From sequence record ON568341.1: 64,000 nt of DNA; one strand, 5' to 3'. Position 1 is the stretch's first letter; each line of letters begins with the position of its first letter. This document shows positions 443-64,000 of the stretch, in pieces. Position numbers and translations under genes: made by a program. The notes under the pieces were generated by a model. That model saw only the letters and a program-made list of their open reading frames with translations. It ran no database searches and was not told where the DNA came from.

Positions 443-571
<129 letters not shown>

Positions 572-575
572 AATA

Positions 576-652
576 CGGGGTATAGCACAATTGGATAGTG
601 CAAGAGAATTCTAATCTCTAGGTTGGGGGTTCAAGTCCCTCTACCTCGGCCA
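576..652 (+). tRNA. tRNA-Arg(UCU)
   Basis: Acceptor CGGGGTA/TACCTCG, arm AGAGA-ATTCTAA-TCTCT, TTCAAGT T-loop, CCA. Confidence 0.95.
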
Positions 653-675
653 ATTTTAATTAAAGGTTAAAAACC

Positions 676-1431
<756 letters not shown>

Positions 1432-1479
1432 ATTCAGTACCAAGGAGATTAATATGTTTAAAGATGAACGTCCAGATTT

Positions 1480-1520
<41 letters not shown>

Positions 1521-1526
1521 GAATTC

Positions 1527-1860
1527 CACAATCAGACGTATATGGTGTAAGCTACGTCGATGCTATCCAGAACAAGATCTCTGGTACTCTAGGAAGTGGT
1601 GAATGTTAACCTAGACGGGTTTGATAATTGGACGATAGGCAATTATTACTTGACTAGCAGGTTGAAACTAGAGGTGACAGTCCTTCACCAAACTGGAAAA
1701 CCGGATGGACTTTTATTTAAAAGGGTAAGGCGTGGAAATATGTTTACAGTAGTTACTTTTAGTAGCCTGTACGCCCCACGTTAAGGTAGTCGAAAGGCAA
1801 GTTAAAACGGGTAGTTATAAAGCTGAATTAACAGCGGCGTTTAACAGCGTCACAAAATAT
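1527..1860 (+). ncRNA. candidate approx 330-nt structured non-coding RNA
   Basis: Directly after promoter; chain of hairpins GACGTA/TACGTC, CCAGA/TCTGG, TCTAGG/CCTAGA, ATAATTG/CAATTAT, GGTGA/TCACC, GGCGT/ACGCC, GTC-GAAA-GGC, GCTG/CAGC. Confidence 0.6.
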
Positions 1861-1886
1861 ACGCATGTTGAATGAGAGGACTAGCC

Positions 1887-2141
1887 ATGATGTTTACTCA
1901 GGAACGATTAAACGAGATTGAGCAAGAACTCTTGAAGATTCAACATGAATTACAAGCCGTTGTTCGTCCTGTTAATTCAGATAATAACGTTTTATCAAAG
2001 TACGCACAGATCAAGCTGTTGGTCATGCACATAATACTCGTATATGGGTATAAGTACTTAAAGGTTATTTGGTCAGTTAGTTCAGTTGGTAGAACGCTTC
2101 ACTTCATAATGAAGAACTTACAGGTTCAAATCCAGAACTGA
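1887..2141 (+). CDS. hypothetical protein; 3' part overlaps a tRNA-like gene
   Basis: SD GAGGA, ATG 1887; last 70 nt are the tRNA-like element so the extent is doubtful. Confidence 0.4.
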   Translation: MMFTQERLNEIEQELLKIQHELQAVVRPVNSDNNVLSKYAQIKLLVMHIILVYGYKYLKVIWSVSSVGRTLHFIMKNLQVQIQN

Positions 2142-2144
2142 CCA
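2071..2144 (+). tRNA. atypical tRNA with 8-nt anticodon loop CUUCAUAA (Met/Ile-derived, possibly pseudogene)
   Basis: Perfect acceptor GGTCAGT/ACTGACC, D arm GTTC-AGTTGGTA-GAAC, CTTCA/TGAAG stem, TTCAAAT T-loop with two A-A mismatches in T stem; ends ACAA. Confidence 0.75.
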
Positions 2145-2151
2145 CAAAAAA

Positions 2152-3849
<1,698 letters not shown>

Positions 3850-3883
3850 AATATTCTCCTGAATTTGCTAAAAGTTATAATAA

Positions 3884-3889
3884 TATTTA
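3884..3889 (-). promoter_or_regulatory. T4-like late promoter core TAAATA
   Basis: Same position relative to SD as in other leftward late genes. Confidence 0.5.
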
Positions 3890-4041
3890 GTTACAATATT
3901 TATGAAATAGATTAAAAATTTGAAATGTGTTCAAAAATATTATAATAAATTTATAAAAAAAAATAAATGATTTTTTTTGAAACGGTTCAAAAAAATGTGG
4001 TATAATATATATGTTGTTCACGGAAAGATTAAGCGGGGATG

Positions 4042-4107
4042 CATGAGTTTGCTTAACGGAGATGATTGCAAATCCGATGTTAGTGGGTTAGAATCCCACA
4101 CTCACTG
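4042..4107 (+). pseudogene. decayed tRNA-Cys(GCA)-like remnant
   Basis: TTGCAAA loop followed by TCCG, T-arm GTGGG-TTAGAAT-CCCAC, partial acceptor TGAGT/ACTCA; D arm missing. Confidence 0.4.
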
Positions 4108-4108
4108 T

Positions 4109-4206
<98 letters not shown>

Positions 4207-4207
4207 C

Positions 4208-4257
<50 letters not shown>

Positions 4258-4330
4258 CTTTTTAATTTAAAAGTACTTTACTGTAGTGTTTAGTACCGTA
4301 TAATGTAAACAAAAGGATAAAATAAAACTC

Positions 4331-4855
<525 letters not shown>

Positions 4856-4878
4856 TTAAAAAAATCAGTACTTTATTA

Positions 4879-5263
<385 letters not shown>

Positions 5264-5280
5264 TTCACATGATATAGGGA

Positions 5281-5542
<262 letters not shown>

Positions 5543-5550
5543 GAATTTAA

Positions 5551-5952
5551 ATGAAAAAGAATGACTTGATCAAAATGCTTCAAGAAATTGACGGCAATCC
5601 AGAGATTGTTATTTGGAATGGATACGTCGATGATTATATGAACATCGAAAAAGGCTTGACTAAAATCACTCTAGTCAAAGAAACCGAACAGTTTCTTCAG
5701 AGTGCATTAGAGCACGAATGGTGTGAACGTAACAATACATTCGACATTCCAGAAGACCAACGAACCAAGATTGCAGAACGTGCTAAAGAACTGCATAAGA
5801 AACGCGAATACGATTTCCAGAACCCATATGTCACTGAAGACGAATTCAATCGCTGGTACGGTAAAAAGAAATTGACAAAGTATGTCCTTTCACCTAAACT
5901 ACGTGGTAAGACTTCACTTGGTGTATTCAACGCCGCAGACTTAAACTACTAG
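5551..5952 (+). CDS. hypothetical protein
   Basis: ORF with SD AGGA; N-terminus similar to next gene (MKxxDLIKxLQ). Confidence 0.85.
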   Translation: MKKNDLIKMLQEIDGNPEIVIWNGYVDDYMNIEKGLTKITLVKETEQFLQSALEHEWCERNNTFDIPEDQRTKIAERAKELHKKREYDFQNPYVTEDEFNRWYGKKKLTKYVLSPKLRGKTSLGVFNAADLNY

Positions 5953-5961
5953 CGGGTATTA

Positions 5962-6508
<547 letters not shown>

Positions 6509-6510
6509 TA

Positions 6511-6753
<243 letters not shown>

Positions 6754-6774
6754 TATCTTACTTTTAAACAAACT

Positions 6775-6848
6775 GCCTCAATAGCAAAATTGGTAATGCA
6801 CACGATTTGTAATCGTGAGATTTTTCCGTTCGAGTCGGAATTGGGGCA
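6775..6848 (+). tRNA. tRNA-Thr(UGU)
   Basis: GCCTCAA/TTGGGGC, CACGA-TTTGTAA-TCGTG, TTCCG-TTCGAGT-CGGAA; ends ACAA. Confidence 0.92.
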
Positions 6849-6864
6849 CAAATAAAGGCACATT

Positions 6865-8133: not shown

Positions 8134-8358
8134 AAATGTTCCCTCTGATAGCTTTTAATCAGTACTGATTTTCTCCTTATGTGTAGAAGCTATCACCATT
8201 ACAATGATATTATTATCAATTCATTATATTCTTTACCCTCCTAACAGTATCTAGATAAATTTATATTAGATACTGTGATTTTAGAAGTTGCATTTTAACT
8301 TCTTTCCTGTTATACTTAAGGCTGATTCATGTTCGAATCGGCCTTTTTTCTTATATAG

Positions 8359-8784
8359 GTGAATACAATGAATGATTTGTTTACTTTGATCGATAAGTAT
8401 GTTGACATTGTATACCATCAAGTTGGTAGTGATACGTTTGAAACAAAAAACCCAATTAGAGATGGCAATTTTGATGTTGTCGTTGGTTCATTTTTGAATG
8501 GATACACCGAGACATTATACAATAGTAATAATATTTTTATTTCAGTTCAATCCAGACATACATCAGACTATTCTGTTAGCATTGATATTTGGGAAAATAA
8601 TATAGAAATAGATATAACGGAATCTACTAATATTTGTGTTGATGATTCATTTAATCAATTAACTGAGGAAATGTACTTGCAGTTGAATTTTGTACATGAT
8701 CTTACAAATATCAGTTATAAAACATTAAGGAAAATATGTTTTCTTAGTGGGGTGATACGTAGTAATATGAATAAGGATGATTAG
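8359..8784 (+). CDS. hypothetical protein, EExxFQxS-motif family
   Basis: LTEEMYLQLNFVHD; promoter TTGCAT-17-TATACT upstream. Confidence 0.8.
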   Translation: MNTMNDLFTLIDKYVDIVYHQVGSDTFETKNPIRDGNFDVVVGSFLNGYTETLYNSNNIFISVQSRHTSDYSVSIDIWENNIEIDITESTNICVDDSFNQLTEEMYLQLNFVHDLTNISYKTLRKICFLSGVIRSNMNKDD

Positions 8785-17732: not shown

Positions 17733-18686
17733 TTGAAAAAACTAGATTTGAATGCAATTGCAGATGAAGTACTGGACGAATGTTTTTCTAATGAAGAAGT
17801 CAATACACTTGATGCATTAGATTCAGTACAAGATGAAGATAAAGTTCAAAGTAATTTCAAGTTTAATATTAGTCTTAAGCGTCCACATAATGTAACAAAT
17901 GAAGATCTAATCCGTGATATTCAAGCTGGTATCAATGTTAAGAAAAACACTGAACTATTAGTTCGTTATAATTATGGACTAATTGTTGATGTTGCAAGTA
18001 AATGCACGTGTTATATCCCATTTGAAGATAAGATATCATATGGTATTGAGGGATTCATGCGAGCACTAAAAACATTTGATCTTAGTAAGAATGTTAAGTT
18101 CGTTACATACGCATCTTCCAGCATTTATATGACAGTATACAATGAAAGTTCAGATGCCAATCATCTGGTACATTTTCCACGCTATATGAGTGTTAATAAG
18201 ATACAAGTTAAACGCTTTTGTCATGAATATGAGCGTAAGCACGGTTGTCGTCCAACACCTGAACTAATTTCAGAGGGGACGGGAATTGAAATTCAACATG
18301 TAAAGAATTGTTTGTTATTCCAAAGTGAATATACTGCATTGGATGCACCATTGGATGGTGTTTCGGATGGTACGTTAAGTGATATTCTTCATACATCTGA
18401 TTGCGATTACAATCTTAATGTTGATAGTATTCGTGCACCTTTGCGTTATGTCATTAATGATCTAACACATGAATTGAGTACGAAAGAACGTGAAATTATC
18501 CAGCGTGTTCATGGTTTAGGTGAATTTAATCCTGAATCACTTCGTGAAATTGCTGATAGTGGTTTTGTTGATGACAATGGCAAATGTGTTAAATCAAGAT
18601 CATCTGTACACCGTAAATATAGTGAAGCTATAAAAAAACTTAAGAAATTAGTACTTGAAAAAGGGTACGAATACGAAGATTTCTAA
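17733..18686 (+). CDS. phage sigma70-family RNA polymerase sigma factor
   Basis: Region 2 (NYGLIVDVASK, GIEGFMRALKTFD..KFVTYA), region 3 (PTPELISEGTG, ALD), region 4 (LSTKEREII..SLREIA..SRSSVHRK..AIKKLK); TTG start, SD AGGAG. Confidence 0.9.
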   Translation: MKKLDLNAIADEVLDECFSNEEVNTLDALDSVQDEDKVQSNFKFNISLKRPHNVTNEDLIRDIQAGINVKKNTELLVRYNYGLIVDVASKCTCYIPFEDKISYGIEGFMRALKTFDLSKNVKFVTYASSSIYMTVYNESSDANHLVHFPRYMSVNKIQVKRFCHEYERKHGCRPTPELISEGTGIEIQHVKNCLLFQSEYTALDAPLDGVSDGTLSDILHTSDCDYNLNVDSIRAPLRYVINDLTHELSTKEREIIQRVHGLGEFNPESLREIADSGFVDDNGKCVKSRSSVHRKYSEAIKKLKKLVLEKGYEYEDF

Positions 18687-21858: not shown

Positions 21859-22109
21859 TGAAATACATTGTAGCAGTACTCGTCGCATTTTTACTCACTG
21901 CATGTGATGCTTCAACCAAAGAACGCACAAGTGATTTTGAACTCCCTACTGAATTAAAAGAAGCAGGATGTAAGATTTATCGTATGCAACAGGAAGGTGC
22001 TGGTGCAACGTTGTATACAGTTTATTGTCCTAATGCAAACACCAGTACTGGATACACTAGTGGAAAAACACGAATCAACACTTCAGTGATTAATGGAGTA
22101 CAACAATGA
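21858..22109 (+). CDS. putative lipoprotein
   Basis: Lipobox LTAC after hydrophobic signal. Confidence 0.8.
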   Translation: MKYIVAVLVAFLLTACDASTKERTSDFELPTELKEAGCKIYRMQQEGAGATLYTVYCPNANTSTGYTSGKTRINTSVINGVQQ

Positions 22110-22474
22110 GCCTTGATACAACCCGTGCAACAGATTTATTAACTCGTCTGAATGATGAAGAGTATCTTGCTGAAATAAAATACAAGCTTGATAAACTGGT
22201 TCGAAGTGCTGAAGTAATTGAAGTTGAAGGTCACTTACCAATGGATCAATTCCATACGTTCAACGAAGATATGGTTTATTATCCTAATGAAATTTGGATT
22301 GAGTGGCAACATTGGACTGGTAAAACACTACGTATTGAAGGGTATTGTGTGAAGTATGAACGTGATCCTGGTTATGTGACAAAAACTTTGTCAATTTGGT
22401 GTACAAAAACACATGAACTCGTTGAGGTGAATTTGAATTATATGAATGGCTTCCGTTGGGGTGATGTTAAATGA
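22106..22474 (+). CDS. hypothetical protein
   Basis: ATGA overlap. Confidence 0.8.
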   Translation: MSLDTTRATDLLTRLNDEEYLAEIKYKLDKLVRSAEVIEVEGHLPMDQFHTFNEDMVYYPNEIWIEWQHWTGKTLRIEGYCVKYERDPGYVTKTLSIWCTKTHELVEVNLNYMNGFRWGDVK

Positions 22475-45215: not shown

Positions 45216-45953
45216 TTAGACTGAATTGTTAGGATAATATCTCCCCCTTCCCCATATTATTCGCACAGCACCACCACCAGCAGCCGTATAAGAAGAATTA
45301 TCCCATATACTACCACCACCACCATACCTCTTACCAGCACCACCACTACCAGCACCACCATTATATGAACCACCGTAGCTACCACCAATACCATTAGCAC
45401 CTTGAACAATGATACCAGTACCACCACCCGTACCAATGAACGAGGTACTATAGAATGTACCACCCCCACCGCCGCCACCAGCACCATTTTCACCAGTGAT
45501 TGCATCTCCGTTACCACCTTTACCAGTGTAGCCACCAGCACCACCACCAATGACTGCACCACCACTTACACCAGTGTTGCCACCATTACCACCACCATCA
45601 TTAATAGCGTTAGCAGCTTTTCCACCTAGTCCACCAACCGTATATGCACCAGTGAAGCTAACACATAGTTTTTCAGTTCCACGATATAAACCGTTTTCAA
45701 CTGCTGTAGTAGTGTTGGGATGTGTAAGAGAAACACTTAAGTACTCACCACCAGAAACCGGAATATTATTACGCCACGATAAGCCGCCACCAGCACCACG
45801 TTGACCACCCGGCGAAATAACACATACTGATATTTCGGTAACGCCAGCAGGAACTGTAAATTGTGTTGTTCCTATTGTCGTGATTAATTGTTCACCATGT
45901 GGCTTATATTCAATTTTATTCCCGAACTTAACCATTCTTCCAAAAGGTAACAT
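45216..45953 (-). CDS. MLPF-array protein 6, glycine-rich tail-fibre-like domain instead of propeller
   Basis: MLPFGRMVKFGN then FTVPAGVTEISV..GAGGG and AGGGAVRIIW. Confidence 0.8.
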   Translation of the reverse strand: MLPFGRMVKFGNKIEYKPHGEQLITTIGTTQFTVPAGVTEISVCVISPGGQRGAGGGLSWRNNIPVSGGEYLSVSLTHPNTTTAVENGLYRGTEKLCVSFTGAYTVGGLGGKAANAINDGGGNGGNTGVSGGAVIGGGAGGYTGKGGNGDAITGENGAGGGGGGGTFYSTSFIGTGGGTGIIVQGANGIGGSYGGSYNGGAGSGGAGKRYGGGGSIWDNSSYTAAGGGAVRIIWGRGRYYPNNSV

Positions 45954-55598: not shown

Positions 55599-56199
55599 TT
55601 AAACACATATAGACAGGGGAAGCTCCGTAGTGGAAGCATTATACAGGCTTTAACATATGTTGCATATGTTAAAATTCAGCCTGGACAAATGCGATCACTA
55701 GGATTCTCCCCAGGCTAAACCCCGTAACTCTACAGAGAAGCCAATAGCTTCTCTTTGTCATAGGTAGTCATAAGTAATCATATATAAACATTTAAGTAAT
55801 CATTCATACGCACGGTAGTGATTAGTATTGAGTACTAGAGTACAGGAATGTTCACGTTTAATCAAGAACGTAGCAGTACTGCCCCAAAAGTATTCAGTAC
55901 TGAAGGTGTCGATATCCCACTAAGTAGGCAGAGGAAGTCTGCCGTACTTTGTAGTTTCCAAGCTCCTTTTCCATTTTTCAAATTACATCAAATGTATTCA
56001 AAAGTAATCACGTAATGATTAGTACTGAATTATTACTTTCACCTTAATTCCAAATACTCTTTTACCCTTCGGGGAAAATCCCATTACCCCTTGAGGCTCC
56101 AGCAAAAAGTTGGAAAGTACTCCATCGTAAATCTGGATCGTAAAAATTTTGGAGTACCTATGAAATAAAAGTTGGATCTTCGAAAGTTGAAATTTACGT

Positions 56200-56420: not shown

Positions 56421-56675
56421 AACCTCTTTTTTCGTAATATAAACAGTACTGATATTAACAGAATGGTGTCAGTACTGATTTTAATCTAATACAATACACC
56501 CACCAGCTTGTGCTGGTGGATTATCCACTAACAGTATTCAGTACTACATGATAGTCTTCATCCTCCTAGGGTAACATAGTGAGGGCTATTGTGGGAGTAC
56601 TGAATACTCCTTTCACAAGATAGATCTATGGTATAGTACTGACGGATTTTGGGCGTAGTAAGCCTAGGTTAAATT

Positions 56676-56830
56676 TAGACGTAGAGATGTCTAGACCTCC
56701 AGATGGTTGGAAGTAAAGATGGCTATCCCTCTAGGCGGCTGGATGGCTAGATTTCTAGATGGCTGTACTGCTAGACGTTTGGACGGCTAAACGGCTAGAT
56801 GGTTACACGTCTGGAAGTATAGACGGCTAA
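56676..56830 (+). repeat. about 12 iterated copies of RGAYGGCT-like 8-9-mer
   Basis: e.g. AAGATGGCT, GGATGGCT, TAGATGGCT, GGACGGCT, AAACGGCT, TAGACGGCT. Confidence 0.7.
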
Positions 56831-56849
56831 ATCAAAATTTTTATTCTGT

Positions 56850-56923
56850 TTTTTCCAATAGTTCCCCTACCGCGTGAGGATGTTTTTCCCCGCAGTATCT
56901 GGTGTTAGATTTTTCTGAATCTG
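56850..56923 (-). ncRNA. two-hairpin sRNA family member G (degenerate)
   Basis: TTGACA-17-GATAAT (56957-56929); AGATT-CAGAAA-AATCT. Confidence 0.4.
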
Positions 56924-56997
56924 GAATCATTATCTAATAAACTGGGGGCAATGTCAACGGCCTGGATGAATATTTTTAAAAAATAATCTAGTACTAA

Positions 56998-57049
56998 ATT
57001 TTGGGCGTAACTATGCACCCGGTGGGCTTGAGTCTTTCTCGACTTGATG
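56998..57049 (-). ncRNA. two-hairpin sRNA family member A
   Basis: TTGCTT-17-TATAAT; GTC-GAGAAA-GAC..CCC-ACC-GGG-TGC. Confidence 0.6.
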
Positions 57050-57149
57050 AAATAATTATATCAGTACTGGAAAAATAAAGCAATACCATGGAAGCAAAAA
57101 AGTTTTAATTAATTTGCTTGCTATCCTGGGCCGGACTATGGTACTATAT

Positions 57150-57205
57150 TTCAGTACTGAGAAAGTGCGTTTACCTGCTAGGGTGCGGGAGTGTATCCTT
57201 TTTTT
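57150..57205 (+). ncRNA. two-hairpin sRNA family member C
   Basis: TTGCTA-18-TACTAT; GTAC-TGAGAAA-GTGC..CCTGCTAGGGTGC. Confidence 0.5.
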
Positions 57206-57215
57206 ATATCTTGAA

Positions 57216-57266
57216 TTTTGGGCGTAATTCCGCACCCTCTGGGGTTTCCGCTTTCTCGCGTCTATG
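57216..57266 (-). ncRNA. two-hairpin sRNA family member B
   Basis: TTGACT-16-TATAAT; CGC-GAGAAA-GCG..CCC-AGA-GGG-TGC. Confidence 0.6.
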
Positions 57267-57327
57267 TAGTAATTATACGCTTTTTTAGTACTGAGTCAAT
57301 AGCCAAAAACAAAATAATTGAAAATAA

Positions 57328-57430
57328 TTTAACGCGTTTAAACGGCCTGTAAAGCCCTGAAATGATTAGAATGGTGCAAATGTATAGCTTAGGTGTATTA
57401 ATGCGTTAGAATGCGTCTGAGGCCGTTTTA
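57328..57430. repeat. approx 100-bp imperfect palindromic element, related to 62930-63030
   Basis: AAACGGCCT/AGGCCGTTT arms; TTAATGCGTTAGAAT 57398-412 is the reverse complement of 62944-58. Confidence 0.55.
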
Positions 57431-57451
57431 CGTGGTATAGGGATGATTTAG

Positions 57452-57548
57452 TGGATTGATTCAGTACTGAATAATAGTACTCCTATATAGAAAGATAGTT
57501 CCCCTGGATTGATTCAGTACTGAATAATAGTACTCCTATATAGAAAGA
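57452..57548 (+). repeat. 44-bp direct repeat x2
   Basis: 57452-95 = 57505-48 (TGGATTGATTCAGTACTGAATAATAGTACTCCTATATAGAAAGA). Confidence 0.95.
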
Positions 57549-57661
57549 AAACTATTTTAAAAGTATTTGTAGAAAGTACTTGCACAGTACTGAAAAAAGC
57601 GTATAATGTTTTACATCGAGAGCGGGAACACTTCCCTACTCACTTTTAAGAGATTAAAACG

Positions 57662-58024
57662 ATGGCGACTCAAATCACTAAAATCATTGCTAACCTGGTT
57701 AACTTCCGCGACGATATGAAAGATCTTCCGGCGGCAACGGTTAAAACTCACATTGACGCATACCGCGAACTGATTAAAATGTTGCCGCTTAAGCGTGAAC
57801 AATACGCCGCTAAACTGATGCTTGATGCGATGATCCATAAGATGATCGCCAGTGATTTGACGATGGTTTATCAGTATATGGGCGAAAATTTCGCGGTGTA
57901 TAGTAAACCAGTACCAGGAATGGAAAGTACAGAAGTATTACACGGTTTAAATTTAAAACAAGATGCATGGGATAATATGCCTCGTTTCCTGGTATGGGCT
58001 GACAGTGGCAAAATTTACGAATAA
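57662..58024 (+). CDS. early hypothetical protein
   Basis: Own promoter and leader hairpin. Confidence 0.85.
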   Translation: MATQITKIIANLVNFRDDMKDLPAATVKTHIDAYRELIKMLPLKREQYAAKLMLDAMIHKMIASDLTMVYQYMGENFAVYSKPVPGMESTEVLHGLNLKQDAWDNMPRFLVWADSGKIYE

Positions 58025-58116
58025 GTTAAAAATTAGTTTGACAGTACTGAATAAAAGCGTATAATGTTTTACATCAGGTGGGGAATAGTTCCCCACTATA
58101 TAAGAGGATTAAAAAA

Positions 58117-58356
58117 ATGGCTAAATCAAAAATGTTCTTAGGTCACAAAAACAAAACTCATTGGAATGTAAGCCTGTGGATTAATAACGATGAGGGATTG
58201 TATCGGTTGGCCCTGGACTTTATTGCCGCCCATACTAATCGCAATGATGCGGCCCGTCATATGATGTTATTTTTAGAACAGACTGGACAAGATAAAACAC
58301 CGGACGGATTCAAATATAGCACTACTGCGATCCGTGCGGCGATGGTTGGAATGTAA
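58117..58356 (+). CDS. early hypothetical protein (WNVSLWINN family) copy 1
   Basis: SD GAGG; start ATG 58117; paralog of 60157. Confidence 0.85.
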   Translation: MAKSKMFLGHKNKTHWNVSLWINNDEGLYRLALDFIAAHTNRNDAARHMMLFLEQTGQDKTPDGFKYSTTAIRAAMVGM

Positions 58357-58442
58357 TAGAATTTATTTAAAGTACTATCATTTTTTTGCGATAGTACTTT
58401 ATAATAGTGTTTTATTCATACACCAACGATAAGGGCAACAGC

Positions 58443-58709
58443 ATGAATATTAAGTATTTTGCGACGCGTGAACAAGCTCGGATCGCCGCACGCCAGGACG
58501 GGGCAACGTTTAAAGATATGGGCGTACAATCGGAACGTGGTAAACGTTGGGCCATTGTAAAGCGTAGTACCGCCAGATCATTACAGTACTGGTTAGCGGC
58601 CTTAAAAAGTCCCGATAGTGTATCGCGTCGAGTGGTAGAAATAAAGCTCGACCGAAAGGGCAACCGCGTGACTGTGTACCGTACTAAAAAGATTGCAGTA
58701 CTTGAATAA
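58443..58709 (+). CDS. early basic hypothetical protein
   Basis: Start ATG 58443; Arg/Lys-rich. Confidence 0.75.
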   Translation: MNIKYFATREQARIAARQDGATFKDMGVQSERGKRWAIVKRSTARSLQYWLAALKSPDSVSRRVVEIKLDRKGNRVTVYRTKKIAVLE

Positions 58710-58796
58710 AAAGTACTTGCAAACTATGTTTAAAGGCGTATAATGTTTTACATCGAGAGCGGGAACTCTTCCCGCCTATAACCTGGAGTAATAAAA

Positions 58797-59027
58797 ATGA
58801 CTAATATGTATATGACTGAAGTTAAAACCGTAAAAGATACTACCACGAATAAAACTACTTACTTACAGCGGATCTGTGGTGTATGGCAACGTATCAGCAA
58901 ATCAAAGTACTTTAAATTAACATCATATGCAAACCGTTCGGATTCATTCAGTACTGAAATAAAAGGTAATAAAGTACACCAATACGGCACTTATTATTAT
59001 TACAGCCTGGACGCGATTGCAGTATAA
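58797..59027 (+). CDS. early hypothetical protein
   Basis: SD GGAG; own promoter. Confidence 0.8.
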   Translation: MTNMYMTEVKTVKDTTTNKTTYLQRICGVWQRISKSKYFKLTSYANRSDSFSTEIKGNKVHQYGTYYYYSLDAIAV

Positions 59028-59094
59028 TCATATTTTTTGAAAAATTTACAATTGCCGGTATTGACTTATTTTGTCAGTACTGGCATAATGTATT

Positions 59095-59140
59095 CATTGG
59101 CAGATAAGCCGTAGCCCATAGGGTGCGGGAGTGTATCTAT
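59095..59140 (+). ncRNA. two-hairpin sRNA family member D
   Basis: TTGACT-17-CATAAT; GGC-AGATAA-GCC..CCC-ATA-GGG-TGC. Confidence 0.6.
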
Positions 59141-59164
59141 AGAAAAATTAGTTTAGTATAGTTA

Positions 59165-59200
59165 CAATTGTGCACCCGGTGGGTTAGCTGTTGTCATGGG
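59165..59200 (-). ncRNA. two-hairpin sRNA family member E
   Basis: TTGACA-17-CATAAT; CCC-ACC-GGG-TGC, first hairpin weak. Confidence 0.5.
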
Positions 59201-59311
59201 GTATATTATGCCAGTACTTGATAATGCTGTCAATACTTTTTTTACTATTCAGTACTGAAAACTATTTTTAAAAAGTACTTGCTAACTATGTTTAAAGGCG
59301 TATAATGTTTT

Positions 59312-59386
59312 ACATCAGGACGGGGAACGAAATAAGTAACCCCGTTAAGTAGTCCAGGAGTAAGACATACGAAAAACTCCCCTGAT
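59312..59386 (+). ncRNA. stand-alone 75-nt structured RNA with 14-nt loop motif
   Basis: Promoter 59279, no ORF; ATCAGG/CCTGAT, ACGGGG/CCCCGT, GGAGT-AAGACATACGAAAA-ACTCC. Confidence 0.65.
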
Positions 59387-59454
59387 AAAATAGTTTGACA
59401 AATGTTTTTAAAAGCGTATAATACTTACATCAACTACTGAATGAGGGTTACAAA

Positions 59455-60066
59455 ATGAAAACTATCACTACTACTACTTTTGTTATGGCTTTTTCTGAAC
59501 TGAACGCAGAACAAAAAACGGCGGCTATCGAACTGGTTCGGGATCGTGAGCGTTCATGTGAGGATAATTTCTTTGCTGAGGGCGTTATCGAGTACTATAA
59601 AGAAACAGTACTACCAGAATACGGCATAGATGAAGCTGAATTGCAATACAGTGGTTTTTGGTCGCAAGGTGACGGTGCATCAATCAGTACTGACAGCGTG
59701 GACGCGGAGAAGTTTTTACGCAAGATTAAAGCGTTAACGAAATATCGTTCTATCCGTCACTTGTTGAATGAAGATGATTTGGCAATGAGTGTAGAACGTT
59801 CACACTCTCGCTACGCACACGAAAACACGGTAAGCGGTTGCGTTGATACTCGCTACACTGATTTAACTGTAAAACAAGCGGCACTTGCTGATGACCTGGA
59901 AAACTTACTGACTGATGCGATCCGTGAATTATCTCGTAAGTTGTACCGTGATTTAGAGAATGCATATGAGGATCAATTCACTACTGAAAACATTACTGCA
60001 CTGATTGAGGGTAACGAATATCAATTCAATGTTATTGATGGCGTAGTGGAATCAATCGAATATTAA
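59455..60066 (+). CDS. early acidic hypothetical protein
   Basis: SD GAGG; YSGFWSQGDGAS motif. Confidence 0.85.
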   Translation: MKTITTTTFVMAFSELNAEQKTAAIELVRDRERSCEDNFFAEGVIEYYKETVLPEYGIDEAELQYSGFWSQGDGASISTDSVDAEKFLRKIKALTKYRSIRHLLNEDDLAMSVERSHSRYAHENTVSGCVDTRYTDLTVKQAALADDLENLLTDAIRELSRKLYRDLENAYEDQFTTENITALIEGNEYQFNVIDGVVESIEY

Positions 60067-60156
60067 TTCAAAAAGTACTTGTAAACTAAGTTTAAAAGCG
60101 TATAATACTTTACATCAAGGCGGGGAGTGGTTCCCCGCTCAAACGAGGATTTAAAA

Positions 60157-60396
60157 ATGGCTAGTACTAAAACTTACAACGGACACAAAAACAAAACTCA
60201 TTGGAATGTAAGCCTTTGGATTAATAACGGTGAGTCATTGTATCGGCTTGCACAAAGTTGCATCGCACAAAGTAGAACTAAAGATATTGCTGCGGAATGT
60301 ATGTACCGCAGATTAAAAGCCAACGGTACTACTACAACACCGGACGGATTCAAATATAGCACTACTGCGATCCGTGCTGCAATGGTTGGAATGTAA
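60157..60396 (+). CDS. early hypothetical protein (WNVSLWINN family) copy 2
   Basis: Shares long identical DNA blocks at both ends with 58117. Confidence 0.85.
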   Translation: MASTKTYNGHKNKTHWNVSLWINNGESLYRLAQSCIAQSRTKDIAAECMYRRLKANGTTTTPDGFKYSTTAIRAAMVGM

Positions 60397-60453
60397 TATT
60401 CAGTACTGAGATAATGGCGGGTAATAGTTCCCGCCTTTACTGAGGGTTATCTA

Positions 60454-60714
60454 ATGAGTAAAGTAATTAGCTATACAGCACTAAGCAAGACATTATCTAT
60501 TAGCCAGTGCACCGATGGTTATTGGCTATTTGATGAAACGCGTGGCATGAATTTAGCCATGCGTGCAAAAACTGCTGAGGCGGCGTATCTTGAAGCATTG
60601 GAATACTACCAGGAACGTTTAAAGGAAGTAGAAGAAGATTATAAAAGCCTCAAAGCGAAAGTAGATCATTTCGTCGGTCAATTCATCGAGGAAGACGACG
60701 ACAAACAATATTGA
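60454..60714 (+). CDS. early hypothetical protein with coiled-coil tail
   Basis: SD GAGG. Confidence 0.85.
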   Translation: MSKVISYTALSKTLSISQCTDGYWLFDETRGMNLAMRAKTAEAAYLEALEYYQERLKEVEEDYKSLKAKVDHFVGQFIEEDDDKQY

Positions 60715-60800
60715 AAAAGTACTTGCAATTAGTTTTCAGTACTGTATAATGGTTTACATCAAAGGGAGAAATGGTTCTCCCTGGTAATGAGGAAAATAAA

Positions 60801-61022
60801 ATGGCTAATATCACTACTCTTTCCCAACTGGAAGCACTGGTGAAATCTATGCGGGAACATGCCGACAAAATCGGCGTACAAGATCCAGCCGTTTGCTTCT
60901 GCGACGAATTGAATGATGATACACTGGTAATAGCAGAAGTCCAGGACGTTTCTAACTATTCCTCGCGTTACACTGGCGGCGTAGCAAATAAAGGCGACTT
61001 CTGTTTATACCTTACAAAATAA
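60801..61022 (+). CDS. early hypothetical protein
   Basis: SD GAGG; start ATG 60801. Confidence 0.8.
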   Translation: MANITTLSQLEALVKSMREHADKIGVQDPAVCFCDELNDDTLVIAEVQDVSNYSSRYTGGVANKGDFCLYLTK

Positions 61023-61079
61023 CAACGCGGGGAGATAATAACTCCCCGTTACTTTTTCAGTACTGAATCATTTAATAGA

Positions 61080-61124
61080 CGGATCTCGGCACCCGGTGGG
61101 TTAGTGACTGTTTCGTCTTGATGT
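61080..61124 (-). ncRNA. two-hairpin sRNA family member F
   Basis: TTGACA-17-CATAAT; GAC-GAAACA-GTC..CCC-ACC-GGG-TGC. Confidence 0.6.
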
Positions 61125-61265
61125 AGTAATTATGCCAGTACTGGATGCACTTGTCAACAACTATTTTTCAAATACTTTTTATTAAAATACTTGCAATTAG
61201 TTTTTAAACGCGTATAATGTTTTGCATAGGGGGAGCGGTTCCCCTGGTAACTAAGGAATAAGAAA

Positions 61266-61502
61266 ATGCTCGAACAAATCAAATCAACGTCTGCGAATGT
61301 AACGGGAACTGTATCACACTTTACTAGTGATGAATCGCGTGGTGTTCCTTATTGTGCTGTACATGTAAACACTGATGGCAACTACTGGTTTACGGTTTAC
61401 GGATCATATTCATTTGGTCGGCCAGGACATCAAAAAATCCTGGATAAAGTACAGCCAACGGGTAAAAATATCACTGCTGAAATGTTTTATAAAAAATCAT
61501 AA
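61266..61502 (+). CDS. early hypothetical protein
   Basis: SD AAGGA; own promoter. Confidence 0.8.
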   Translation: MLEQIKSTSANVTGTVSHFTSDESRGVPYCAVHVNTDGNYWFTVYGSYSFGRPGHQKILDKVQPTGKNITAEMFYKKS

Positions 61503-61586
61503 AGTACTTGATAATAGTTTTTAGTACTGTATAATATTTTACATCGCAAGGGGGAGCGGTTCCCCCTGGTAACTAAGGATAATAAA

Positions 61587-61886
61587 ATGAAAATTGCAAT
61601 CATCGCCCTGGCTTTATCTGTTTCCTCTTTCGCTGTTAATGCGTCATTAGATGTAAGTAGTGAAAAATTCATTCAGTGCACTGTTGCAATGACCGATGAA
61701 AGTACTGGCGAGATTGTATTAAAGGATTTAGAGATCCAGCCGGAAGCATTTAAAAACGGCCCGTTCCATGAAGAAGACGAAAACGGTAGCACATCAATTT
61801 ATTATGATGCCAGTACTAAACGCGGTTCGGTCACTGTAATGGATACTGAGAAAGTAACGCATACCGGCGTTATTAATTGCCGTTGA
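61587..61886 (+). CDS. early exported two-Cys protein
   Basis: Signal peptide ending VNA. Confidence 0.85.
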   Translation: MKIAIIALALSVSSFAVNASLDVSSEKFIQCTVAMTDESTGEIVLKDLEIQPEAFKNGPFHEEDENGSTSIYYDASTKRGSVTVMDTEKVTHTGVINCR

Positions 61887-61907
61887 TAGATACTACGGGG
61901 TAACATC

Positions 61908-62138
61908 ATGACTAAGCGAATTGTTTTACTTAACGAAAGCAGTACTACACAACTACTTAACGCCGTGCATTATGATATTGAAACGAGCGTTAATCTTATC
62001 AGTACTGTAGTACTGTTGGACACTGGAAAGGTCGCCAATGATAAAGCGATTGCAGGTATATTAACGGATCTTGAGCCTGGTAGCAGTGCACCAATAACGT
62101 TAAATGGTAAAGTGTTTAATATTTTACTCACTGATTAA
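61908..62138 (+). CDS. early hypothetical protein
   Basis: SD GGGG. Confidence 0.75.
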   Translation: MTKRIVLLNESSTTQLLNAVHYDIETSVNLISTVVLLDTGKVANDKAIAGILTDLEPGSSAPITLNGKVFNILLTD

Positions 62139-62144
62139 GTACAT

Positions 62145-62166
62145 AGCCCACCTGGTGGGCTTTTTT
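62145..62166 (+). terminator. intrinsic terminator
   Basis: AGCCCACC-T-GGTGGGCT plus T-run. Confidence 0.85.
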
Positions 62167-62253
62167 GTTTTTGTAGTATCGTAGTACTGAGATACTTTGA
62201 AAATAGTTTTAAGAAAGTAGTTGACATTACCGCAGAAAAGCGTAGAATGTATT

Positions 62254-62328
62254 ACATCAAGACGGGGAGCACTAAGTAGACCGCCAGTAAGTCGAACGAA
62301 AAACTGGACACGTCGAGAAAACTTTGAT
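62254..62328 (+). promoter_or_regulatory. structured 5' leader sharing the 14-nt-loop motif with the 59312 RNA
   Basis: CCAGT-AAGTCGAACGAAAA-ACTGG. Confidence 0.65.
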
Positions 62329-62371
62329 ACACTAATAAACGTAAACTAAACTTTAATTGAGGATTTATAAA

Positions 62372-62854
62372 ATGGCTAATGTAAAATCATTTCTGAAAGC
62401 ACTGATTTCTAACGACACTGCTATTGCGGCTGAATTGCTGGCGGATCTGGATAGCGATACCATGAAAGCAGTACGCAACAATTTTAACATTGCGTACAGT
62501 GAAGCTAAAGAACTGCAAGCCAAAAAGATAGCAGAACTGGAAGAACAGAAAAAAGCCCGTGAAGAAGAACTACAAGCAACGATTGAAAGTATTCAGGCGG
62601 CGGTTGCAGGGTTGGATCTGGAAGTAGTTATTGAAATGGCACATAAAGCACTGGCAGTTAAGTACGGGGAAGATAAGCCAGTAACTAAACCTAAAAAATG
62701 GATTCAGGAACGCGTAACGGTTGTTCTTGATAATGGCGAGGAACATTTAATTCCCGTGCGTGGTAACTGCATTGCGGTAGTTCTGGATGCTATCAAAGAA
62801 AGCGGATTGACTCGCGAGGAATGGATCGAAGCTCACCGCAAAATTGAAGCATAA
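62372..62854 (+). CDS. H-NS-like nucleoid protein (divergent)
   Basis: N-terminal coiled coil, linker, C-terminal VLDNGEEHLIPVRGNCIAVVLDAIKESGLTREEW aligning by eye to H-NS [34 protein letters not shown]; start ATG 62372. Confidence 0.55.
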   Translation: MANVKSFLKALISNDTAIAAELLADLDSDTMKAVRNNFNIAYSEAKELQAKKIAELEEQKKAREEELQATIESIQAAVAGLDLEVVIEMAHKALAVKYGEDKPVTKPKKWIQERVTVVLDNGEEHLIPVRGNCIAVVLDAIKESGLTREEWIEAHRKIEA

Positions 62855-62875
62855 CAATTAAAGTACTGAATCACT

Positions 62876-62902
62876 AGCCCACTTCTTATAGTGGGCTTTT
62901 TT
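62876..62902 (+). terminator. intrinsic terminator
   Basis: AGCCCACT..AGTGGGCT plus T-run. Confidence 0.85.
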
Positions 62903-63129
62903 GTGTTTATCGTTTACCAGTCCACTAGCACCGCCTAGAATCGATTCTAACGCATTAAACTGATTATCTGATGAATAGCCCTAGCTGGTGGCGTTAATGC
63001 CGTTAGAAAGCGATTGAGGACGTTTAAAGTATTTTGCAAAAAGTAATAAAAAGTACTTGCACGATTAAGAGATTAGAGTATAATTAATTACATCAAGACA
63101 AGACACCTTAACTAACTGAGGATATAAAG

Positions 63130-63282
63130 ATGAATACTTATGAACTGGATTGTTTCACTTTACAAGTAATGTCAGTATGCAGTAAAAAAGATTGGTCATC
63201 AAAGGAATTTAAAGCAGTTATTGCGTGTGCAAAACACGGCAAGACTATCAATGAAACGGCATCAATCATTGATAAACTTTAA
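63130..63282 (+). CDS. early hypothetical 50-aa protein
   Basis: Manual translation; SD GAGG; own promoter. Confidence 0.7.
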   Translation: MNTYELDCFTLQVMSVCSKKDWSSKEFKAVIACAKHGKTINETASIIDKL

Positions 63283-63354
63283 AAAATAGTTTGACAATAG
63301 TTTTAAGTACTGCGATAATACATACATCAACTACTGAATAGGAATAAAAAAACA

Positions 63355-63582
63355 ATGGCTATCATCATTACTTACGTATCTGGTACTACTGGCACTGCTT
63401 CAACTGTTGCTGTAATTACTAATAAGAAAGGAGCGGAATTACATTTTGCAATGGATAATTGGGCCGTGAAGGAGTTCGGACCGTGGGCAAGTGTAGCATA
63501 CATTGAAACCTATCAAGTGCCATCGATTAGCTTAACTGATTTAGGTGTAGATCGAATCTTATGCCTGGATGAATTAATTTAA
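63355..63582 (+). CDS. early hypothetical protein
   Basis: SD AGGA; own promoter. Confidence 0.8.
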   Translation: MAIIITYVSGTTGTASTVAVITNKKGAELHFAMDNWAVKEFGPWASVAYIETYQVPSISLTDLGVDRILCLDELI

Positions 63583-63668
63583 AAAAGTACTTGCAAAGTA
63601 AATCGAATAAAGTATAATACATTACATCAAGGGGAGAAAATGGTTCTCCCCACTAAGAGGAAACTAAT

Positions 63669-63812
63669 ATGAAAACTTGTCAATGTGGTAAAAAATCTAT
63701 TACTGGTTTGAAACGGGGCGTTGCACTTTGCCAGTACCATTATAATTTACAAGTATGGGGTAAAGAATGGGCCGATCAAGTGGAAGCAATTAAGAAAGCA
63801 AAAAGTAAGTAA
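63669..63812 (+). CDS. early 47-aa putative zinc-binding protein
   Basis: MKTCQCG..LCQYH; SD GAGG. Confidence 0.7.
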   Translation: MKTCQCGKKSITGLKRGVALCQYHYNLQVWGKEWADQVEAIKKAKSK

Positions 63813-63893
63813 AAATATTATCACAGTACTATTGACATAGATTGATAGTACTGGCATAATAGATTTTATCAAGACAACTAAGAGGAAATTAAA

Positions 63894-64000
63894 ATGGCTA
63901 ACATCAATACTATAGCAGCACAAAATATTAACCTGTCTTCTGTTGAAGTTGTACACATTGCCGCCCGGCGTTGGTTCCAGGCGTCTTATGGTAATACTTA
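63894..64000 (+). CDS. early hypothetical protein, truncated by window end
   Basis: SD GAGG; MANINT..RRWFQASYGNTY. Confidence 0.75.
   Translation, partial: MANINTIAAQNINLSSVEVVHIAARRWFQASYGNT

Follow-up and report, generated by a model that had tools for sequence, protein, structure and literature searches.

The direct terminal repeat (DTR) of Escherichia phage UE-S1, an Asteriusvirus jumbo phage of the 121Q/PBECO4 group, carries in its first 5 kb several small transcription units, each made up of a promoter and an RNA module of about 50 nt that contains no open reading frame (ORF). The window analysed here is a stretch of 64 kb, positions 62001-126000 of record ON568341.1, and positions are given in its own numbering. 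A first-pass annotation of the window had described six to seven such units, here named A to G. A single family includes A, B, D, E and F as full members and C in degenerate form, and G, a separate leftward promoter unit, is outside it. The results showed that this family of small, self-contained transcription units is restricted to the long DTR of RaK2-like enterobacterial jumbo phages and shared by all enterobacterial relatives of UE-S1, and they support action at the level of RNA, or at least on the sense strand.

The units lie where the first-pass annotation had placed them, and their occurrence is far above chance as judged by sequence pattern, promoters and covariance scores. Six sites with the pattern CCCNNNGGGTGC are present in the 64 kb where 0.04 would be expected, all but one of them inside A, B, D, E and F. 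R1, a covariance model derived from the units and from orthologues in eight relatives, scores these five units at 50.7-59.2 bits (E 1e-10 to 1e-12), and with its filters off it finds no other match below E = 0.1 in the rest of the window. A, B, D, E, F and G are preceded by near-consensus sigma-70 promoters (9-11 of 12 matches); a consensus promoter had been assigned to every unit, from which C departs with 8 of 12. No ORF with a start codon and a ribosome-binding site was found inside the units, as had been claimed, and a coding reading was discarded on this ground. The annotated start of UES1_266 (18141-18497 of the UE-S1 stretch L009, in its own numbering) falls inside unit J; this annotation is a GTG-extended form of the next gene, whose start, about 135 nt away, has a promoter and a ribosome-binding site of its own. 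Six of eight relatives within Asteriusvirus retain A, B, D, E and F, phage UB being without E, and in most relatives the units are unannotated as genes.

Units A-G lie in the first 5 kb of a DTR of about 21 kb whose start lies near position 55,900. This placement follows from two relatives: the homologous stretch of phage vB_Ec-M-J corresponds to 888-3920 of its annotated 21.5-kb DTR, and the repeat of fEgEco12 measures 20,993 bp, as confirmed by restriction digests in a paper that also doubts the 8.3-kb repeat reported for UE-S1 (PMC13070987). The gene strand carries four further units, H-K, shortly after the window end, and the 56 kb of UE-S1 before the repeat contain no unit recognized by R1. 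The covariance search of related phages that the first-pass annotation had proposed detected 82 units below E 1e-3 in 10 loci and 117 units in 20 loci (112 distinct), in the DTRs of Asterius-, Mimas-, Alcyoneus- and Eneladusvirus and their relatives, which bears out the multicopy character attributed to the family. The copies per locus are nine plus the degenerate C in UE-S1, 12 in CBB (Pectobacterium), 13 in GAP32 (Cronobacter), seven in RaK2 (Klebsiella), 10 in pEa_SNUABM_47 (Erwinia), 10 in fHe-Yen9-03 (Yersinia) and nine in fENko-Kae01 (Klebsiella; Kae01 below), and additional copies are carried by metagenomic jumbo contigs. Wherever the bounds of the repeat are annotated every unit is inside it: the 12 units of CBB are within a repeat of 22,456 bp, with none in the following 3.5 kb, and the nine of Kae01 within 19,736 bp, with none in the following 6 kb. 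The units occupy syntenic positions across genera, with about 73-86% DNA identity between homologous units.

No member was detected outside DTRs. The DTR of PA5oct, a Pseudomonas relative, has no R1 member (best E about 1). A 27-nt core pattern gave 45 sites in IMG/VR, distributed over 25 stretches of viral contigs that are nearly all jumbo-phage contigs of 345-378 kb. The same pattern, searched in the genomes of 185,579 bacterial and archaeal species, gave 77 single scattered matches, none of them in Enterobacterales, and R1 scored these bacterial matches at 28 bits or less, though the loci had been pre-selected for the pattern.

The module consists, in this order, of a covarying hairpin with an A/G-rich loop (stem 1), a linker of 4-5 nt, a 12-nt core and a downstream strand matched to the GGGUGC of the core. 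Stem 1 has 3-5 bp and appears in 36 different sequences; at least three pairs are formed in 81% of the units, against 40% of the shuffles, and its commonest loops are GAGAAA (26 units), GCGAAA (14), AGATAA (13) and AGAACAA (8). In the model alignment each of the four stem 1 pairs presents 27-34 sequences changed on both sides, and the covariation score of 0.437 compares with 0.243 in shuffles, none of 500 reaching it, and with at most 0.125 in slid controls. The linker is constrained in its last three columns (U in 95 of 111 units, A in 98 and a purine in 102), and the core itself is nearly invariant: three C (111, 111 and 106 of 111), an A (109 of 111), two free bases and GGGUGC, conserved at 96-100% per position.

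The GGG of the core can be paired in two ways. In the first, the CCC/GGG hairpin (P2), two independent double changes, CCT with AGG, keep the pairing and one GGA variant breaks it; RNAalifold selects P2 alone, with a covariation term near zero. Of the two stems drawn in the first-pass annotation, stem 1 covaries with all Watson-Crick types in the larger alignment, and CCC/GGG, being invariant, is unsupported by covariation. In the second, P3, GGGUGC is paired with six bases located after a 6-nt loop, pairs 1-5 being standard in 97, 100, 93, 100 and 99% of 112 units. Variation in the 3' strand of P3 is confined to the purine/pyrimidine class still able to pair, while the neighbouring column and the loop are free, and the rare changes in the 5' strand agree with P3, being G to A (four times, always opposite U) and C to G (four times, three of them opposite C). 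G-U pairs fill 298 of the 672 cells (44%), and these would be A-C mismatches on the opposite strand, so that P3 is possible on the promoter-sense strand only. P2 and P3 are mutually exclusive and about equally weak (mean -3.4 and -2.7 kcal/mol, P3 being the more stable in 54 of 112). It is the covariation of stem 1 with all Watson-Crick types, together with the 44% of G-U in P3, that supports action as RNA or at least on the sense strand. A loop-to-tail pseudoknot was also considered and rejected: units D, H, I and J allow pairing of the stem 1 loop with the tail, a pairing not kept in 121Q D, A, B, F or K.

A sigma-70-type promoter is present at all 82 units scored (8-12 of 12 matches), and in most of them the -10 element ends 10-12 nt before stem 1, a spacing that would place the RNA start 2-5 nt ahead of the hairpin. 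Roughly two thirds of the units have the orientation of the genes and about one third the opposite one. The first-pass annotation had counted five units against the early genes, and this reflects sampling, given the four co-directional units past its end and the proportion in the whole family. Minus-strand units are of two kinds. Those that stand singly are followed, 25-45 nt after the module, by the bidirectional terminator of a neighbouring gene, a position that predicts RNAs of about 100 nt; the length of about 50 nt proposed earlier is that of the module. A promoter, a predicted small RNA (sRNA) length and an intrinsic terminator are found together in single minus-strand units such as F, RaK2 8777 and Kae01 11001, while plus-strand units have no terminator. 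Each of the other minus-strand units converges on a plus-strand unit across a constant gap of 34 or 52 nt; the convergent pairs B-C and D-E, and the tails shared by A and B and by C and D, are as had been described. Conserved positions for such pairs are about 1 kb and about 3.5 kb in from the left end of the repeat, and CBB and GAP32 have an additional pair near its right end. In units H-K of UE-S1 the -35 element is inside the terminator hairpin of the upstream gene, and only about 45-110 nt, free of terminators, separate the unit from the promoter of the next gene.

Coordinates of the units and of the terminator are collected in the table. Unit A is predicted to fold with P1 and P3 (z -2.25 with the downstream flank). 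In the orthologous tail of B in WPEC3 and UB two positions are changed and the pairing with GGGUGC is kept. Only the 3' half of C matches R1 (15.4 bits, E 0.2-0.5), and its P3 is followed by a run of seven T, which makes it terminator-like (site 57180-57199). Stem 1 of D is replaced by ATTG/CAAT in 121Q and by GCC/GGC in UB. Unit E has no stem 1 in UE-S1, and stem 1 is gone in most Asteriusviruses, while the WPEC3 orthologue has GAC/GTC. The orthologues of F keep the same stem with loop variants; the terminator hairpin is common to F and to the plus-strand gene 60771-61022, and with it the RNA of F is predicted to end at about 105 nt. Unit G has no core and no R1 match and is kept within Asteriusvirus, where its orthologues were aligned. 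Its transcripts would run towards the left end of the terminal repeat through 56680-56850, a region adjoining the repeat start with dense short repeated words (of the ggctagatgg and tagacggcta kind) for which Tandem Repeats Finder gives no resolution.

Table 1. Units and terminator in the left part of the terminal repeat (window positions; promoter matches out of 12)
Feature	Position	Strand	Description
Unit G	56865-56957	minus	promoter 56957-56929; AGATT/AATCT hairpin; second G/C hairpin; z -2.7
Unit A	57001-57083	minus	-35 57083-57078, -10 57060-57055, promoter 9/12; R1 57.9 bits
Unit A, RNA module	57053-57001	minus	stem 1 GTC/GAC, loop GAGAAA, core, helix P3
Unit C	57118-57206	plus	promoter 8/12; stem 1 GTAC/GTGC; core CCT, 4-base loop, GGGTGC
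Unit B	57218-57299	minus	promoter 57299-57272 (11/12); R1 55.9 bits; convergent with C
Unit B, RNA module	57270-57218	minus	stem 1 CGC/GCG
Unit D	59061-59140	plus	promoter 59061-59089 (10/12, extended -10); R1 50.7 bits; convergent with E
Unit D, RNA module	59089-59140	plus	stem 1 GGC/GCC
Unit E	59158-59233	minus	promoter 59233-59205 (11/12); R1 55.3 bits
Unit E, RNA module	59209-59158	minus	
Bidirectional terminator hairpin	61016-61049	both	terminator-like site on each strand and fold of 61012-61124
Unit F	61075-61157	minus	promoter 61157-61129 (11/12); R1 59.2 bits
Unit F, RNA module	61127-61075	minus	stem 1 GAC/GTC

The remainder of the UE-S1 repeat is made up of small genes in series, of unassigned function, and each one inspected has its own promoter and a G-rich 5' hairpin. 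From 57570 to 64000 each small early ORF inspected carries one common cassette, in the order A/T-rich stretch, AGTACT, TTGCAA-like -35, consensus -10, fixed leader, G-rich 5' hairpin and ribosome-binding site (for instance 57575-57640, 58038-58105, 58717-58785, 60079-60145, 60723-60790 and 61191-61255). Two of the early proteins (58117-58353 and 60157-60393) are paralogues of 79 amino acids that belong to Pfam family DUF7249. The palindrome CAGTACTG, with core AGTACT and often within TTCAGTACTGAA, occurs 53 times in the window against 0.8 expected (e.g. 57062, 57152, 57462, 57515, 59075 and 61136); it is located in the promoter spacers of the units, immediately before the -35 of gene promoters and, for most units, at a distance of 10-25 nt downstream, and may be a small hairpin or an operator to which a phage regulator binds. 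The interval from the B/C pair to the first early gene contains a perfect 44-nt direct repeat (57452-57495 and 57505-57548) with the AGTACT palindrome twice per copy. The octamer GCTGGTGG, which we take to be the E. coli Chi site, is found eight times in the window against about 0.2 expected (14678, four in 45281-45794, 56500-56519 and 62984); the inverted pair at 56500-56519 makes a hairpin near the left end of the repeat, and the octamer is also directly 3' of units I and K (15140 and 20430 of L009).

Tentatively, and with slightly less than even confidence, the units are read as genes for abundant immediate-early trans-acting sRNAs with one common partner, most likely a protein. A covarying hairpin, a strand-specific helix, an invariant core and an obligatory promoter point to function as RNA, and the mixed orientation of the units, with the sRNA-like ends of the minus-strand copies, points to action in trans. 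The host RNA polymerase would transcribe the units as the DNA enters, with no translation required, from about ten copies per repeat and hence about twenty per genome. All RNAs would offer the same invariant core, displayed between variable helices, to one partner, and would either titrate it or form a complex with it. The partner, of host or phage origin, would most likely be a protein, as both folds of the core are marginally stable alone and the window offered no complementary RNA target. The terminator of the neighbouring gene would end the minus-strand copies as sRNAs of about 100 nt, and plus-strand copies would require processing or serve a double role as leaders. The timing is presumed early from the promoter type and from RNA-seq of PA5oct, in which the DTR is an early, highly transcribed region that also holds highly expressed ORF-less RNAs (PMC7318152); with the units lying in the terminal repeat, this agrees with the early region assigned in the first-pass annotation. 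The decoy idea of that annotation is one version of the same reading, in which the RNAs may act as decoys although they copy no RNA found in the searches. A bolder version, to which we give a low probability, is an RNA-only first line of takeover or counter-defence, in which some 20 strong promoters would flood the cell within the first minute, free of translation, and the core would capture a factor conserved in Enterobacterales. An RNase, an RNA chaperone or a defence effector could be so captured, by a sponge that has no host RNA as its model.

Several observations weigh against sRNAs acting in trans. Single-sequence folding energies are unremarkable (z -0.2 to -2.7). The plus-strand units, about two thirds of the family, are without a terminator and end about 45-110 nt before the promoter of the next gene, and could be leaders. 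Distinct stem 1 lineages are kept across genera, which a pure dosage decoy does not need, and the conserved convergent pairs have no explanation in a small-RNA model. No partner was identified, the neighbouring early proteins all being of unassigned function; the 203-amino acid protein encoded after D/E lacks a relative of solved structure and has no detectable relation to the 225-amino acid protein that follows the first CBB pair. Finally, the searchable literature holds no expression data for these phages.

A second explanation, which we regard as unlikely on balance, is a cis-acting promoter-proximal RNA element. In it the nascent module would act on its own polymerase and set the read-through of early-region terminators, as a put/nut-like element, a hairpin-stabilized pause or a P2/P3 attenuator. 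In its favour, the transcription start is never more than a few bases from the beginning of the module, two thirds of the copies share the direction of the genes and are placed between a terminator, which they follow directly, and the next gene, and the core has two mutually exclusive folds of similar stability, with P3 and a T-run making a terminator-like structure in C and a few relatives. However, in most copies P3 has no following T-run, every gene already has its own promoter, and convergent pairs would collide. Moreover, one third of the units oppose all genes, many of them reaching a terminator after about 50 nt with nothing beyond to transcribe, and no cis-regulatory family of Rfam matches the module.

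A role at the DNA level is improbable in any of its forms. The core is an inverted repeat (4 bases, 3-base spacer, 4 bases) that a dimer could bind about 30 bp past the start, as an operator or roadblock; alternatively, promoter and G-rich transcript could prime replication through an R-loop, as in T4 oriF and oriG, or the unit could be a recombination cassette like the PeSLs of T4-type phages. In favour of such a role are the invariance of CCC and GGG, the two CCT/AGG double changes, which also keep the inverted repeat in DNA, and confinement to the DTR, with convergent pairs conserved near both of its ends. The displaced non-template strand has the sequence of the RNA, so that covariation cannot separate the two. 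But a protein site on duplex DNA leaves both the covariation of stem 1 and a 3' strand of P3 that remains compatible with G-U unexplained, early sigma-70 promoters would fire before replication proteins exist, and the breakpoints between related phages fall on the gene-promoter cassettes and not on the units.

It is likewise quite improbable that the RNAs are base-pairing 'sibling' sRNAs, with the single-stranded linker and core as seed for host or phage mRNAs and the terminator and A/U-rich parts for a chaperone. The layout of the minus-strand units (5' conserved region, A/U-rich spacer, intrinsic terminator) resembles that of chaperone-dependent sRNAs, and an invariant stretch between variable helices would suit a seed. 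Nevertheless, half of this candidate seed is occupied by P2 or P3, and the window contains no complementary site, the 10-nt complement being found 0 times against 0.7 expected and the 7-nt complement at chance level. As for functionless repeated promoter cassettes, duplication relics or spare strong promoters, the degenerate C, the loss of stem 1 of E in most Asteriusviruses and the absence of E from UB are of the kind expected, but a core conserved at 95-100% per column and compensatory stems across genera, with homologous units at the DNA identity given above and in syntenic positions, make this explanation very improbable.

If sRNAs acting in trans are indeed what the units encode, and a host factor is titrated, they would represent a new type of translation-independent takeover or anti-defence device; were the action in cis, a new polymerase-modifying leader. 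Several jumbo phages of the RaK2 group are candidates for phage therapy, and their repeats of about 20 kb are full of uncharacterized early genes. The family, which has at least 8-13 conserved units per repeat, each with a promoter, and is kept across at least four genera, implies that a sizeable part of the early programme is non-coding. With more than 100 members, compensatory changes and a strand-specific helix it is among the better supported new phage RNA motifs, and R1 gives an immediate handle for its annotation. No described family or searchable paper covers the units, and they go unmentioned in the searchable papers on Asteriusvirus, RaK2, GAP32, CBB, phAPEC6 and fEgEco12.

Known systems share one or another trait with the units. 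Phage RNA decoys that copy a host RNA (pseudo-ToxI, RNA anti-CRISPRs and solitary repeat units) are also ORF-less and could act before any phage protein is made; they differ in that no host counterpart of the core was found among the 185,579 species genomes and that the units are not in tandem. A type III antitoxin mimic, which would have tandem direct repeats of a 34-45 nt unit, was rejected on the dispersed arrangement, without tandem array, Rfam match or bacterial counterpart, an RNA anti-CRISPR or solitary CRISPR repeat on the lack of an Rfam match at E up to 10 and of the core pattern in enterobacterial genomes, and mimicry of a host RNA because no enterobacterial genome with the core pattern, hence no model RNA, was found. 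The protein-titrating and multicopy sibling sRNAs of bacteria (CsrB/CsrC, 6S, Qrr type) are likewise paralogous small RNA genes with own promoters, one conserved recognition element and variable scaffolds, whereas the units have one element per RNA instead of a dozen or more and are phage-borne and confined to the terminal repeat; the GGA motif needed by CsrA is not invariant in either loop. The put element of HK022 and the nut boxA/boxB of lambdoid phages, promoter-proximal antitermination RNAs, are similar in being a short structured RNA right after an early promoter, with about two hairpins in 50-70 nt and a hairpin with a purine-rich loop beside a conserved linear stretch. They differ in the order and sequence of the elements, and in the units the copies are many and in both orientations, with downstream genes that have their own promoters; no matching Rfam family and no N-like protein were identified. 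In the window Rfam 15 gave at gathering scores only the tRNAs at 482-6849, and three weak matches attributable to chance when E values up to 10 were admitted, none of them on a unit core; this covers whatever CRISPR-repeat and type III antitoxin families are in Rfam. A tRNA-like reading was discarded as well, since ARAGORN tRNAs are limited to 482-6849 and no phage tRNA starts with the core hexamer; one of that cluster of seven (2071-2145) was assigned an undetermined specificity and a four-base anticodon (tcat).

A parallel in position is found in PA5oct, whose 39-kb terminal repeat contains two ORF-less regions that are highly transcribed in published RNA-seq, ncRNA001 and ncRNA002 (8263-8498 and 21951-22401 of the PA5oct stretch L016; 236 and 451 nt), annotated without known promoters (PMC7318152). 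These are non-coding transcripts inside a long terminal repeat, abundant from early infection on, and the likeness is positional only, as R1 detects no homology. The PeSLs of T4-type phages are strong early promoters with terminator stem-loops, located upstream of orphan ORFs, that mark recombination breakpoints (PMC2839356, PMC4122927). With them the units share the many copies, the strong sigma-70-like early promoter joined to a stem-loop, the plastic early regions of small uncharacterized genes, here in phages with a distant relationship to T4, and, in H-K, the -35 inside the upstream terminator hairpin, which makes a composite terminator/promoter. However, a PeSL is directly upstream of an ORF and its stem-loop is a terminator without fixed sequence, whereas the units are not followed by an ORF, have an invariant core and two constrained helices and are antisense in a third of the copies. 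Identity was rejected since no ORF with a ribosome-binding site comes after the units, the next gene having its own promoter or the unit being antisense, and a PeSL-like role in recombination since the breakpoints (58052-58112, 58719, 59258, 60070-60144, 60398-60416 and 60701-60715) are on the gene-promoter cassettes and not on A-F. It fits these observations that the PeSL-like elements of the window are the gene promoters, which carry all breakpoints between relatives.

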